Assembly: GCA_038087875.1 (NCBI GenBank)
Contig: JAXLNO010004250.1
Span: 186,001-250,000 of the forward strand
Length of the DNA: 64,000 bases
Reading direction: 5' to 3'
From: Malacoraja senta
Taxonomy: Eukaryota
Shown: piece after piece, positions 12,802 through 47,128 of the stretch
Layout: every line of letters begins with the position of its first letter
Numbering within the stretch: the stretch's first letter is position 1
Made by a program: the position numbers and the translations under genes
The notes under the pieces: generated by a model
What the model was told of the DNA's origin: nothing
Database searches by the model: none
Seen by the model: only the letters and a program-made list of their open reading frames with translations

Positions 12802-13334
12802 TTACACACCCGGAGCGGAACCAGAGCAGATTCTCAGCCACTTGTCTTTATCCCAAGTCCCGAAGTAAGGATAAAGTTTCTCCGTGAATTTATTCCCAGT
12901 GAAGGTGTAGAGATGGGACTTGGTGTCCGCGTCGCAAAATGAAACTGTCCCAGACTCGTAACTGAGATAAACTCCCACCCTCCTGGGGATGGGACGGGCG
13001 GGGAGAGGGGATGGAGGGGAGGTGAATGCATCAAACCCATCACCCTGTCGCCCGATGCTCCAGACTCCAGTCTCCGGGGTCAGTGCGACCTCTCTCTTCC
13101 TCTCCACAGACTCTGCAGCGACTCCCAGACTCCAGCGCTGACTCCCCGCCACCTCCACCTCCCAGTAATGTTTCCCCGATGTGAATCCCTCCGATCCCAG
13201 CACACACAGCCAGCCTGTAAACCTCTTCCCAGTGTCGGGGAGAGTCCTCTTGGTCCCGGTATTTCTCACCCTCTTCCGATCCTCAGAAACCTCGAGCTCT
13301 GGATGCGCTGTTTCCACATCCAGGGTGATGGAGA
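12802..13334 (-). CDS. B30.2 (PRY-SPRY) terminal exon, copy A, intact
   Basis: ctgcttctccccccag|TC TCC ATC ACC CTG GAT GTG GAA ACA, 533 nt open to TAA. Motifs [49 protein letters not shown]. Confidence 0.9.
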
Positions 13335-13904
13335 CTGGGGGGAGAAGCAGAGAATCAGAGAGTCAGTCCCCATGGGTCGGGGGAAACTCGGGCAGCAGCG
13401 GCCCCGGGACCGGGGGAGAGGCCGCTCGGCCTCGGGCACAGGCGGGCGGACAACTGGACGATATCCCGGCGTTTTCCTACCCACCAACATCCCATGGACA
13501 AAACATGTTTCCCGGAGTTTCCTAATTGGGGTGGAAGTGGACGGGAAGCGGGTGAACGGTGAGAAATAAGAACAAACTGCTGGAGGAAGTCCGCGGGTCA
13601 GGCAACACATGTGTAAGGAAATGACAGAACACGTCTAGGGTCTGGACACGTCTTCATTCTCATGTTTCCCTCTGCTCCCTCCGTAGAAAGAGACAGGGGA
13701 AGGGGTGCAGCAAAATACTTCACTCTGTTTATCTATGAGTATGTGAGAATGTGTGTGAGTGTGTGTGTGAGTGTGTGTGTGTGAGCGTGAGTGTGTGTCT
13801 GTGAGTATGTGTGTGTGAGCGTGTGTTAGAGTATGTGTGTGTGTGTAAAAGTGTGTGAGTATGTGTGTGTGTTAGTGTGAACGTGTGTGTGTGTGAGTCA
13901 AGTC

Positions 13905-15570
13905 ACATTTATTTATATAGCACATTTAAAAAACAACTCTCGTTGGCCAAAGTGCTTTACATTTGTTATAAGAATAGCACAAAACAAAACAAACTACATA
14001 GAGTCACTTATTAAAGATGGGATAGCAGCACATTTGGAAAGTGGTGAAATCATTGGACAAAGTCAGCATGGATTTATGAAAGGTAAATCATGTCTGACGA
14101 ATCTTATAGAATTTTTCAAGGATGTAACTAGTAGAGTGGATAGGGGAGAACCAGTGGATGTGTTGTATCTGGACTTTCAGAAGGCTTTCGACAAGGTACC
14201 ACATAAGAGATTAGGATACAAACTTAAATCACACGGTATTGGGGGTTCAGTATTTATGTGGATAGAGAACTGGCTGGCAAACAGGAAGCAAAGAGTAGGA
14301 GTAAACGGGTCCTTTTCACAATGGCAGGCAGTAACTAGTGGGGTACCGCAGGGCTCAGTGCTGGGACCCCAGCTATTTACAATTTATATTAATGATCTGG
14401 ATGAGGGAATTGAAGGCAACATCTCCAAGTTTGCGGATGACTAAGCTGGGGGGCAGTGTTAGCTGTGAGGAGGATGCTAGGAGACTGCAAGGTGACTTGG
14501 ATAGGCTGGGTGAGTGGGCAAATGTTTGGCAGATGCAGTATAATGTGGATAAATGTGAGGTTATCCACTTTGGTGGCAAAAACAGGAAAGCAGACTATTA
14601 TCTAAATGGTGGCCGATTAGGAAAAGGGGAGATGCAGCGAGACCTGGGTGTCATGGTACACCAGTCATTGAAAGTAGGCATGCAGGTGCAGCAGGCAGTG
14701 AAGAAAGCGAATGGTATGTTGGCCTTCATAGCAAGAGGATTTGAGTATAGGAGCAGGGAGGTTCTACTGCAGTTGTACAGGGTCTTGGTGAGACCACACC
14801 TGGAGTATTGCGTACAGTTCTGGTCTCCAAATCTGAGGAAGGACATTATAGCCATAGAGGGAGTGCAGAGAAGGTTCACCAGACTGATTCCTGGGATGTC
14901 AGGACTTTCATATGAAGAAAGACTGGATAGACTTGGCTTATACTCGCTAGAATTTAGGAGATTGAGAGGGGATCTTATAGAAACGTACAAAATTCTTATG
15001 GGGTTGGACAGGCTAGATGCAGGAAGATTGTTCCCGATGTTGGGGAAGTCCAGGACAAGGGGTCACAGCTTAAGCATAAGCGGGAAATCCTTTAAGACCG
15101 AGATGAGGAAAAACTTTTTCACAGAGAGTGGTGAATCTCTGGAACTCTCTGCCACAGAGGGTAGTTGAGGCCAGTTCATTGGCTATATTTAAGAGGGAGT
15201 TAGATGTGGCTAAGGGGATCAGGGGGTATGGAGAGAAGGCAGGTACAGGATACTGAGTTTGATGATCAGCCATGATCATATTGAATGGCGGTGCAGGCTC
15301 GAAGGGCCGAATGGCCTACTCCTGCACCTATTTTCTATGTATGTATCTATATATACATGCAGCCCTCACACAGAGGACGTCAGGAAAGGCTTGGGAGTAT
15401 AGATAAGTCTTTATTCTTGAATTAAAAGAGTCGATGGAGGGGGCAGTTCTGATGCTGTTCCACAATCTAGGGGCTGCAACTGCAAAGGCGCGGTTGCCCC
15501 TGAGCTTATGCCTAGACCGCGGGATATTCAGCAAACCCCAAGTTGGCTGATCTGAGGGGCCTGGATGAGA
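13905..15570. mobile_element. L2-like 3' tail (minus, about 13905-13990), CR1 RT to 3' end (plus, about 13997-15350) and L2 C-terminal fragment (minus, about 15355-15570)
   Basis: CR1 RT motifs. L2-type C-terminus PRSRHKLRGNRAFAVAAPRLWNS...KTYLYSQAF. Confidence 0.85.
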
Positions 15571-15959
15571 GTGTGTATGAGAGTGCGTGTCAGAGTGTGT
15601 GAGTGTGTATATAAATGTGTGTGTGTGTCCATATACATATATACCAGGCAAAGCTCGTAATGTTCACTCAGTACATGTACATATTGGGCAGAGCAGCTTC
15701 TGTGAAGAGGTGAGGAGAACTGGTGGAGCAAGACAGGTGGGTTCAGATGAGGGGAGGGGGTAGAGCAGTGCAGGTGGGTTCAGGTGAGGGGGGGTGATTG
15801 GTAGAACGACCAGGTGGGGGGAGAAGGGTGGAGACAGGAACCGAGGCTGGAGGTGATGAGCTGAAGACAAAGGGATGAGAATGATGGATCTGATAAGAAT
15901 TGAAGGTGTGGTGAGAAACATAGAACCAGAGGGAGGTTGGAGCGCATTGGATCCAAGAA

Positions 15960-17130
15960 GAGATAGCTAATTGGATAGAACATTGGCTTCATGGAGGGAA
16001 GCAGAGGGTGATGAGGGAAGGTTGTTTTCCGGACTGGAGGCCTGTGACCAGTGGTGTGTCTCACGGTTCTGTGTTTGTATCAATGATCTGGGTGAGAATG
16101 TACATGGCATGATTAGCAAGTTTGTAGATGACACAAGAGGGGGTGGTATTGTGGATAGTGAAGATGGTTGTCAAAAATTACAGCAGGATCTTGATCGGTT
16201 GGGCAGATGGGCTGAGGAATGGTTGATGGTATTTAATACAGGATTAAATACAGATTTAATGTAGGAGTGCAGGTACATAGTTCCTTGAAAGTGGCGTCAC
16301 AGGTAGATAGTGTGTTCATAAAGTGTTTCAGCACATTGGCCTTCATCAGTCACAGTATTGAGTATAGAAGTTGGGAGGTCACGTTGCGGATATATAAGAC
16401 GTTGGTGATGCCACATTTGGAGTGTTGTGTTCAGTTCTGGGCACCATGTTATAGGAAATATGTTGTCAGGCTGTAAAGGGTACAGATAAGATTTACGAGG
16501 ATGTTGCCAGGAATCGAGGGCCTGAGATATAGAGAGAGGGTGAGCAGGCTAGGACTTTTCATTGTAGCGCAGGAGAATGAGTGATCATATAGAGGTGTAC
16601 AATATCGAGAGAGGAATAGAACGGGTAAACGCACAGAGTCTCGTCCCCAGAGTAGGGGAATCAACAACCATAGGTTTAAAGTAAGGGGGGGGGGGGGGTA
16701 GATTCAATAGGAACCTGAGAGGGAACTCTTTTACACAAAGGGTGATGGGATTACGGAACGAGCTGTAAGAAGAGGTAGTTGAGGCAGAAGTGTATAGAAT
16801 TATGACAGGCATAGAACGGGTGGACAGTCAGAACCTTTCTCCCAGGGTGAAAATAATCAAAGACTCGAGGACATAGCTTTAAGGTGAGACGGGCAAAGTT
16901 TAAAGGATTTGTGCGGGGCAAGTTGTTTTCCCAGTGTGGGGAGTACCTGGGATGTGCTGCCGGGGGTGGTGGTGGAGGCAGATACGATAGTGGCATTTTA
17001 GATAGACACCTGGATATACAGGGAATGGTGGATATGGATTATGTGCAGGCAGATAAGAGCTGGTCTTCGCACCATGTTCTGCACAGACATTGTGGGCCGA
17101 ATGGCCTGTTCTTGTGCTGTACTGTTCTAC
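15960..17130 (+). mobile_element. Old, diverged CR1 fragments
   Basis: SKFVDDT and PHLECCVQFWAP, plus two degenerate 3' regions. Duplicated at about 31070-31950. Confidence 0.8.
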
Positions 17131-46120: not shown

Positions 46121-46127
46121 GCCATTT

Positions 46128-46585
46128 TTTATCCCTCCAAACCTGTCCTATCCATGTACCACACCTGTCCTATCCATGTAACACACCTGTCCTATCCATG
46201 TACCACACCTGTCCTATCCATGTACCACACCTGTCCTATCCATGTACCACACCTGTCCTATCCATGTACCACACCTGTCCTATCCATGTACCACACCTGT
46301 CCTATCCATGTACCACACCTGTCCTATCCATGTACCACACCTGTCCTATCCATGTACCACACCTGTCCTATCCATGTACTACACCTGTCCTATCCATGTA
46401 CAACACCCGCCCTATCCATGTACCACACCTGTCCTATCCATGTACCACACCTGTCCTATCCATGTAACACACCTGTCCTATCCATGTACCACACCTGTCC
46501 TATCCATGTACCACACCTGTCCTATCCATGTACACCTGTACCACACCTGTCCTATACATGTACCACCCCTGTCCTATCCATGTAA
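46128..46585. repeat. 22-bp minisatellite, about 20 copies
   Basis: Unit CCTGTCCTATCCATGTACCACA. Confidence 0.95.
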
Positions 46586-47073
46586 GAGTATGGATTGAAG
46601 AATATTTGCCAACCTGAGCACATCCCAACAGGCTACAGTAGACATTTGGTGCCAAGGGAAGTGTCATCAGTGTTGTGATGCAGGAAGCCAAATGTACACA
46701 GCAAGCTCACACGGGCAGCAACGTGATAGCGACAAGATATTCACTTTCAGTGACACTGCTGAAGGACAAAGAATATTCAGGCAACCGAACATGTTCCTCT
46801 TCAGGGGACATGCTCTTCAGGTCAGCAGTTTCATCACAACTAAAGACAGTAGCTACAAAAGAGCAGCATCATCACAAACCCAGGCTGGAGCATCAGCCTA
46901 AAGCTGTGCCTCATGACTCAGCAAGGGCTTTGAATCCACCTTCTCCGACTCAACCCACACGGTCGCTGACTGTCCCGTTTCCGCCCAGTCTCAACTCATG
47001 CAAGACTAGACCGAGTGTACAAACTACCGAACAAGGCGCGATTGACTCTTGCAGTAACTATTCCACAGCTTAC

Positions 47074-47128
47074 CCATCATTGCAGTCTGGAGAAGTAGGA
47101 TCAGTACAATCCCGCATCGTCCCTTCAT
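47074..47128 (-). CDS. BTN-like gene, leader (signal peptide) exon
   Basis: Minus strand reads ccaag|ATG AAG GGA CGA TGC GGG ATT GTA CTG ATC CTA CTT CTC CAG ACT GCA ATG ATG G|gtaagc = MKGRCGIVLILLLQTAMM. 55 nt, hydrophobic core, strong donor, phase 1 matching the IgV acceptor. Confidence 0.8.

Follow-up and report, generated by a model that had tools for sequence, protein, structure and literature searches.

Tandem-duplicated microexon and B30.2 modules of two types, possibly used in series, behind one butyrophilin ectodomain in Malacoraja senta

Butyrophilins sense the cell interior through their B30.2 domain, of which the mammalian proteins have one copy. A stretch of 64,000 nucleotides (nt) from Malacoraja senta (assembly GCA_038087875.1, contig JAXLNO010004250.1, positions 186,001-250,000 of the forward strand; this whole stretch is called the window, and coordinates are counted from its first letter) raises the question of how several B30.2 exons are used behind a single ectodomain. 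On its minus strand lies a butyrophilin-like gene, recognised from its six-frame open reading frames (ORFs), by Pfam and by tblastn with butyrophilins of sharks and skates, in which one set of leader, IgV, IgC and transmembrane (TM) exons and a juxtamembrane microexon, m1, is followed by the B30.2 copies D, C (partial), B and A, in that order. The original prediction was an alternative-last-exon cassette, in which the constant ectodomain would be joined mutually exclusively to D, B or A as swappable cytoplasmic sensors. As judged from the sequence, a gene with serial B30.2 modules is more likely than such a cassette. The reading we favour, to which we give about an even chance of being right, is that the copies are tandem-duplicated modules of two types, each with a microexon and a B30.2 exon, that are probably used in series.

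To describe the modules we call a B30.2 exon read-on when it ends in a splice donor and terminal when it ends in a proper stop codon; a slash marks a splice site. The features of the array, all on the minus strand, are the following.

32022-32048, minus strand: microexon m2 of the D unit, GYEDVERYY, homologous to GYEDVERDC of the skate proteins P0265 and P0381, with AATAAA 26 nt downstream
29188-29579, minus strand: conserved intron block of D, 97.4% identical to the A block and 97.9% to the B block
28661-29187, minus strand: B30.2 exon D, read-on, ending ...CTGG/GTGAGTAA donor after 28669; despite three deletions of 1 nt and one of 3 nt the net length is in frame
27283-27461, minus strand: partial B30.2 copy C, the 3' third (last 185 nt) only, with a read-on end, inside a 1.3-kb stretch matching the B region
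24412-24790, minus strand: conserved intron block of B, cut by a gap at 24795
23885-24411, minus strand: B30.2 exon B, read-on, with a GTGAGT donor after 23889; four 1-nt insertions or deletions (indels), net -2
17219-17245, minus strand: microexon m2 of the A unit, GYEDVERYY, collinear with the m2 of the Amblyraja locus L002, with AATAAA 26 nt downstream
13335-13723, minus strand: conserved intron block of A, 94.5% identical to Amblyraja and 86-87% to two Rhinoraja modules
12802-13334, minus strand: B30.2 exon A, terminal, intact PRY and SPRY (Pfam, 5e-20 and 4e-23), ending ...GGTGTGTAA
12652-12657, minus strand: AATAAA polyadenylation (poly(A)) signal, 145 nt after the stop of A, at the same position (+147) in Amblyraja

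All full copies (D, B and A) have the same phase-1 acceptor, ...ctgcttctcccccc(c)ag/TC, and the block directly upstream of them measures 389-392 nt and is 96.3-97.9% identical between copies, as anticipated when a shared acceptor and an upstream block of about 400 bp were first noted. The positions given for three full-length exons and one partial copy also hold, but only A has an intact PRY and SPRY frame. A search for phase-1 microexons bounded by AG and GT and similar to GYEDVERDC, the linker in proteins of Amblyraja and Leucoraja, revealed m2, a 27-nt exon with perfect splice sites (cag/.../gtaagt), which is present in two copies, one ahead of D and one ahead of A. The 655 bp around the two copies are 97.7% identical, and the homology of the two units extends from 17653 to 12799 in one and from 32456 to 28660 in the other. 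Since m2 was duplicated together with the D and A units, the repeated unit consists of microexon, intron and B30.2 exon. The earlier statement that the copies have no upstream coding exons of their own is therefore correct with regard to IgV, IgC and TM, none of which occurs a second time, but not with regard to the m2 microexon in front of D and A. A 27-nt minisatellite, GACTCCACTTGAACCCGGCTGGGACCA, is found at 17594-17707 and 32391-32456, exactly at the upstream limit of the A-unit/D-unit homology, and may represent the duplication breakpoint.

The two module types are distinguished by their 3' ends. B, C and D end in ...CTGG/GTGAGTAAA(A)GATAAGCAAACTCC, a consensus phase-1 donor (G/GTGAGT) that overlaps a stop codon, whereas A ends in ...GGTGTGTAAAAGCGTCGGG with a proper stop and is of the terminal type. 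Both ends recur with the same flanks in related skates: the GTGAGT donor and its downstream flank are common to B, C, D and the read-on module Rl1 of Rhinoraja longicauda, in which Rl2 is terminal, and the GTGTGTAA end with AATAAA at +145/+147 is common to A and the terminal module of Amblyraja. The nearest AATAAA lies at +145 for A, +716 for B, +714 for C and +1068 for D, so that a poly(A) signal close by, as each last exon of a cassette should have, is found near A only. At the DNA level, D and B each possess what an internal exon of a serial gene needs, namely a usable donor (G/GTGAGT after 28669 and 23889, respectively) in phase with the next acceptor. Exon D measured to its donor (29187-28669) is 519 nt, a multiple of three, and joining the ectodomain exons to m2, D, m2 and A gives an open frame of 1941 nt or 646 amino acids (aa), while the addition of B breaks the frame. 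The open frames of D and B are uninformative, because off-frame stops are sparse in all the B30.2 exons.

A serial gene of this kind would have arisen by enlargement of its 3' end through tandem duplication of the 27-nt juxtamembrane microexon, the intron and the B30.2 exon, yielding modules of a read-on type (D, B and the partial C) and one terminal module (A). The transcript would run ectodomain-TM-m1-m2-B30.2(read-on)-m2-B30.2(terminal), a serial splicing that we infer for this species, and its product would be a butyrophilin carrying at least two B30.2 domains in its cytoplasmic part. Transcripts that end early, after m1 or m2, would in addition give forms devoid of B30.2. The AATAAA located 26 nt past both m2 copies, together with transcript contigs and models of relatives that end by read-through after m1 (P0380) or m2 (P0383 and P0385), makes such B30.2-less isoforms likely.

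How does the cassette fare against these data? The acceptor and upstream block common to all copies would suit it, as would the diversification of the copies in the ligand-binding loops and the use of alternative 3' ends by relatives of the gene; moreover, an in-frame stop (GE followed by the stop) is placed right at the end of D, which could terminate the protein if the donor were left unused. However, D, B and C have a consensus donor instead of a nearby poly(A) signal, the modules bring their own linker microexon, the models of relatives use the modules one after the other, and B and D are frameshifted as assembled. The read-on donors, the separate microexons and the relatives' models together point to modules in series and not to mutually exclusive last exons, and we consider the cassette very unlikely. 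Part of the original idea of functional extra copies nevertheless survives: with their retained acceptor, their lack of a 5' set of their own and their selected substitutions, the copies are not random debris.

The related skate loci indicate where the modules came from. In Amblyraja radiata (L002, CM021395.1) a single module, made up of m2 and an intact terminal B30.2 exon, follows 4.9 kb after m1. When the m1-m2 intron of the window is compared with that of L002 it appears split into two parts (34727-32883 and 19257-17246), with D, C, B and transposons in between. As A is collinear with the only Amblyraja module and the intron is split by the other copies, A is the ancestral terminal module, to which D, C and B were added. 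A protein tree of 29 B30.2 domains was star-like and supported only B and D as sisters (84/90), so the modules could not be dated.

Serial arrangements are found in two relatives, in both cases as NCBI models of 651 aa. In Leucoraja erinacea (P0381, XP_055486834.1) a read-on B30.2 exon is followed by a second GYEDV microexon and a second B30.2 exon, with the junction ...RICPSSLR/GYEDVEQDC/VSVTLD..., and in Rhinoraja longicauda (P0281) the two B30.2 exons are likewise joined via the read-on donor, with the junction ...RICSGSIP/GYEDVQRAY/VSVTLD.... The gene in the window has the same plan as P0381 and the Amblyraja protein P0265 (XP_032903494.1), that is leader, IgV, IgC, TM, ELQLFLSME, GYEDVExxx and B30.2, with 90-94% identity in IgV. 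It resembles P0381 further in having a read-on B30.2 (D or B), then a second microexon and a terminal B30.2 (A); the differences are that the window contains at least two full read-on modules and a partial one, while P0381 contains one, and that those of the window are frameshifted in the assembly. The P0281 locus (L003) has a read-on exon with the same GGGTGAGTAAAAGATAA... end and, 10.7 kb further on, GYEDVQRAY and a B30.2 exon of the terminal type. Its two B30.2 exons are both preceded by the upstream intron block (86-87% identity to the window), but its ectodomain belongs to another subfamily, similar to P0022, and both of its B30.2 exons are intact.

Some observations on the wider cluster and on other fishes may be recorded here. 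The orthologous Amblyraja gene (L002) contains two IgV exons (12351-12700 and 36747-37096) that lie 24 kb apart and are 96.6% and 96.0% identical to the IgV exon of the window, and the NCBI model P0265 spans 337 kb and strings together three IgV domains, which indicates that 5' exons have also been duplicated in the cluster. Dozens of short TRIM39-like proteins (170-300 aa, PRY/SPRY only; among P0151-P0262) are annotated in skates and rays, many of them on the Amblyraja chromosome that also carries the butyrophilin cluster. In B30.2 they are 80-86% identical to exon A, and it thus appears that one family of B30.2 exons is shared by TRIM-like and butyrophilin-like genes. Among the best 150 representatives, it is common to find fish proteins predicted to carry 2 to 8 B30.2 domains in tandem (P0001, P0003, P0008 and P0401); in one of them, a BTN1A1-like protein of Scleropages, two such domains directly abut each other. 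Serial B30.2 models accordingly occur outside skates as well.

Whether the read-on modules have been translated can be judged from the way they diverged. Between copies the exons share 90.5-92.7% identity, whereas the intron block next to them shares 96.3-97.9% (Fisher p 2e-5 to 1e-3), and the ratio of nonsynonymous to synonymous substitution rates (dN/dS) was 1.3 for A-B, 1.2 for A-D and 3.75 for B-D. When polarised, the private changes amounted to 13 nonsynonymous and 0 synonymous in B (13:0) and to 12 and 3 in D (12:3). Invariant columns, defined as the 30 columns conserved at 93% or more across 353 B30.2 domains, were left intact in B (0/30 broken) and broken once in D (1/30), where a Tyr is changed to Cys in the near-invariant HYWEVEV motif, and the 44 positions at which A, B and D differ lie in columns that are hypervariable throughout the family (Mann-Whitney p 7e-11). 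The dN/dS values, the excess of exon over intron divergence and the spared columns suggest that the modules evolved as translated, diversifying domains. They would have been diversified by positive selection at the usual B30.2 variable loops, and hence translated for most of their history.

The frames of B and D in the assembly tell a different story. Relative to A and three outgroup exons, B has private indels of -1, +1, -1 and -1 near 24266, 24171, 24016 and 23926, and D has -1, -3, -1 and -1 near 29030, 28991, 28855 and 28786. As assembled, the reading frame is consequently broken at about 24266 in B and at about 29030 in D, the SPRY core including HYWEVEV is lost, and neither exon offers a continuous frame; read with X at the breaks, however, both give full-length alignments free of stop codons. 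The original prediction had named frameshifted and unexpressed copies B and D as a finding that would overturn it; the frameshifts are indeed in the assembly, and they count only if the indels are real.

Several features of the indels bear on this point. In the block and exon of both B and D, indels and substitutions occur at a ratio of about 1:1, and the flanks of B and C differ by 7 indel events and 8 substitutions, whereas the upstream intron of the same units gives normal values of 4:18 and 4:35. Nearly all the indels are changes in homopolymer length; B, C and D are the copies most similar to each other and lie near contig ends; and C, a 98.6% copy of B, is without the two 3' deletions of B. 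On the other hand, the assembly is not full of indels throughout, since long ORFs survive in the young long interspersed nuclear element (LINE) at 40336-43207, and this argues that the indels of B and D are real. On balance, consensus errors in near-identical repeats seem slightly ahead of very recent inactivation as the source of the 1-nt indels in B and D.

If instead the indels are genuine, the extra copies may be decaying duplicates: the 3' end would have been copied by segmental duplication, with only A spliced to the ectodomain and D, B and C skipped as truly frameshifted pseudo-exons. In line with this, B and D together carry seven private frameshifting indels, D has lost the Tyr of HYWEVEV and C is truncated, while a nearby poly(A) signal, as well as collinearity with the one module of Amblyraja, is found for A only. 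Decay predicts a dN/dS of about 1 and equal divergence of exon and intron, however, and what is seen is 13:0 and 12:3 and an exon divergence 2.5-4 times that of the intron block. Moreover, conserved columns are spared, changes are confined to hypervariable ones, and different genera have kept the read-on donor together with its flank. The 3-4 indels per exon at a neutral divergence of about 1% per lineage are also far above the usual ratio of about 1:8. The signs of a pseudo-exon are in other words half present, with disabling indels in the assembly but a substitution pattern that is not neutral, and we regard decay as a doubtful explanation.

Serial use itself meets a number of objections. 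As assembled, D is shifted out of frame over its central ~85 codons and B does not end in phase, so that a serial product would carry a dead domain or stop early. Exon A has no indel though its intron block has two, which fits real indels filtered by selection and thereby also decay. Ectopic gene conversion is the one alternative source of the selected-looking substitutions: in skates the family is huge, and functional paralogues could have passed such variation on to dead exons. No m2 copy for B is visible in the window, although one may sit in the gaps. The serial models in relatives are automatic NCBI predictions, and P0381 and P0281 could have been over-joined, given that the same pipeline also merges adjacent TRIM genes by way of the G/GT with which B30.2 exons end; no transcript contig across a junction between two B30.2 exons was found, only these two predicted proteins. 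Finally, the RNA runs searched for exon A shared at most 0.16 of its words, i.e. they matched as relatives only. The stretch from IgV to TM shared 0.78 of its words with sequencing run X18, but as the match includes introns, X18 is probably DNA of the source species.

A bolder version of the serial reading takes all the indels to be assembly errors. The gene would then carry a tail of one to three tandem, positively selected B30.2 sensors, with read-on exons either spliced onward or ending the protein, and would act, behind one constant ectodomain, as a modular intracellular sensor of variable valency; we put this forward as a speculative proposal that is rather unlikely to hold in full.

The assembly may also have affected the number of copies. 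Three runs of N occur in the window, and none of them breaks an exon. One gap (24795-25190) begins 4 nt past the conserved block of B, where A and D have a TG microsatellite. The gap at 32506-32880 lies in the m1-m2 intron; its two flanks correspond to places in Amblyraja separated by 2.6 kb, so they cannot be taken as continuous. Being transposon-like, the 773-bp island at 25191-25963 was excluded from the unit. Between the D 3' flank and copy C, a segment of 983 bp (27461-28443) has a GC content of 0.55 and an observed/expected CpG ratio of 0.80; about 870 nt of it are unmatched in the loci of Amblyraja and Rhinoraja, and the D flank resumes at 27572-27465 before C.

Part of the array could be an assembly artefact, with C and its flank (26164-27461) representing a falsely duplicated second haplotype of the 3' part of B and the true copies being fewer. 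This 1.3-kb stretch is 98.6% identical to 22762-24061 and starts mid-exon at a contig end, by the gap at 26163; the region is broken into contigs of 773 bp and 6.3 kb, and about half of the differences between B and C are 1-nt indels. Yet the D 3' flank runs to 27465 and abuts C, which makes a specific junction and not a free contig end. Such an artefact would account for C only: the D, B and A exons are 7-10% diverged and cannot be alleles of one another. We think it somewhat unlikely that the array has been inflated in this way. The idea that the copies belong to separate genes with their 5' exons in the gaps was also considered and judged unlikely, as the intact 5' set spans 12 kb and the window holds no second IgV, IgC or TM exon; in addition, the Amblyraja sequence matching the 32506-32880 gap is plain intron, which counts against hidden 5' exons there.

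We now turn to the part of the gene in front of the modules. The borders of its exons were set by L001, a spliced transcript contig of 1013 nt from a related skate, which is 91-100% identical to the window exon by exon.

47074-47128, minus strand: leader (signal peptide) exon, ATG at 47128, phase-1 donor, 94% identical to L001, splice sites checked
39782-40129, minus strand: IgV exon, 348 nt, Pfam V-set, sole tblastn match, 94% aa identity to Amblyraja radiata P0265
38870-39154, minus strand: IgC exon, 285 nt, Pfam C2-set_3 (1.9e-19), no other in the window
37925-38044, minus strand: TM exon, 120 nt, found by tblastn with P0041, boundary from L001
34728-34754, minus strand: microexon m1, 27 nt, ELQLFLSME, phase 1 to phase 1, 100% identical to L001 and also present in P0265, P0381 and P0380

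Exactly one IgV exon (V-set, 8e-15) and exactly one IgC exon (C2-set_3, the butyrophilin-type IgC) were detected by tblastn in the 64 kb, and leader, TM and m1 match L001, which bears out the single leader-IgV-IgC-TM-microexon set first described. Splicing these exons to m2 and A gives an open model of 1395 nt or 464 aa in which every junction is AG/GT and in phase 1, and this corrects the earlier figures of 1386 nt and 461 aa. An 18-nt exon at 34525-34508 that had been part of the predicted set was dropped, as it is missing from all the relatives' proteins and its donor is GC in Amblyraja. The gene shows the plan of BTN and BTNL genes, with signal peptide, IgV, IgC, a single TM and B30.2 each on its own phase-1 exon, and it also has their juxtamembrane microexons, since m1 and m2 (27 nt each) are kept in transcripts and proteins of relatives. 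By these sequence features it is a member of the butyrophilin family. The closest proteins are skate BTN1A1-like ones, with IgV identities of 94% to Amblyraja radiata P0265 and 90% to Leucoraja P0288.

Two repeats were noticed in intron 1, between leader and IgV. A 22-nt minisatellite, CCACACCTGTCCTATCCATGTA, with about 18-20 copies and 92-96% matches occupies 46137-46584 and gives rise to spurious long ORFs. The young LINE (40336-43207, plus strand) begins about 200 nt upstream of the IgV exon and contains three long consecutive ORFs (endonuclease, reverse transcriptase and a C-terminal part) that are broken only once or twice.

With regard to known systems, the best relatives of exon A with solved structures are the B30.2 domains of BTN2A2, BTN3A and BTN2A1 (about 1e-43 to 1e-38). 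The match to human BTN3A1, BTN2A1 and BTN2A2 (8hjt, 4n7u and 8jyc) is near full length, and the predicted topology, IgV-IgC-TM-B30.2, is the same; the mammalian genes differ in having one B30.2 domain on one terminal exon. Butyrophilins have been reported in cartilaginous fishes (PMC12841164), and we found no description in the literature of butyrophilins with tandem B30.2 domains. In fish finTRIM proteins the variable loops of B30.2 are under positive selection (PMC2657112), and in zebrafish NLR-B30.2 genes a small family-specific exon of 47 bp travels with the B30.2 exon (PMC11192531). The likeness to these families lies in a single B30.2 exon that is duplicated and shuffled, the 47-bp exon being a parallel to the 27-nt m2. 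In finTRIM and NLR genes, however, the modules end the gene, one per gene, and serial arrays behind a butyrophilin ectodomain are not described. A composite internal/terminal exon, which either ends the protein or splices onward, is known from the switch between secreted and membrane immunoglobulin mu. The read-on exons resemble it, by analogy only, in that a stop codon falls inside a usable 5' splice site or directly behind it; they differ in that no proximal poly(A) site follows them.

The locus illustrates how exons under selection can be mistaken for pseudogenes when residual 1-nt indels persist in near-identical repeats. If the serial reading is true, it would explain the many 'orphan' B30.2 exons of ray and skate genomes that annotations list as short TRIM39-like genes, and the arrangement would have arisen early in the history of jawed vertebrates. 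Several fast-diversifying B30.2 domains behind one ectodomain, or a choice among them, would then be another way to widen what a single surface receptor-ligand can report.

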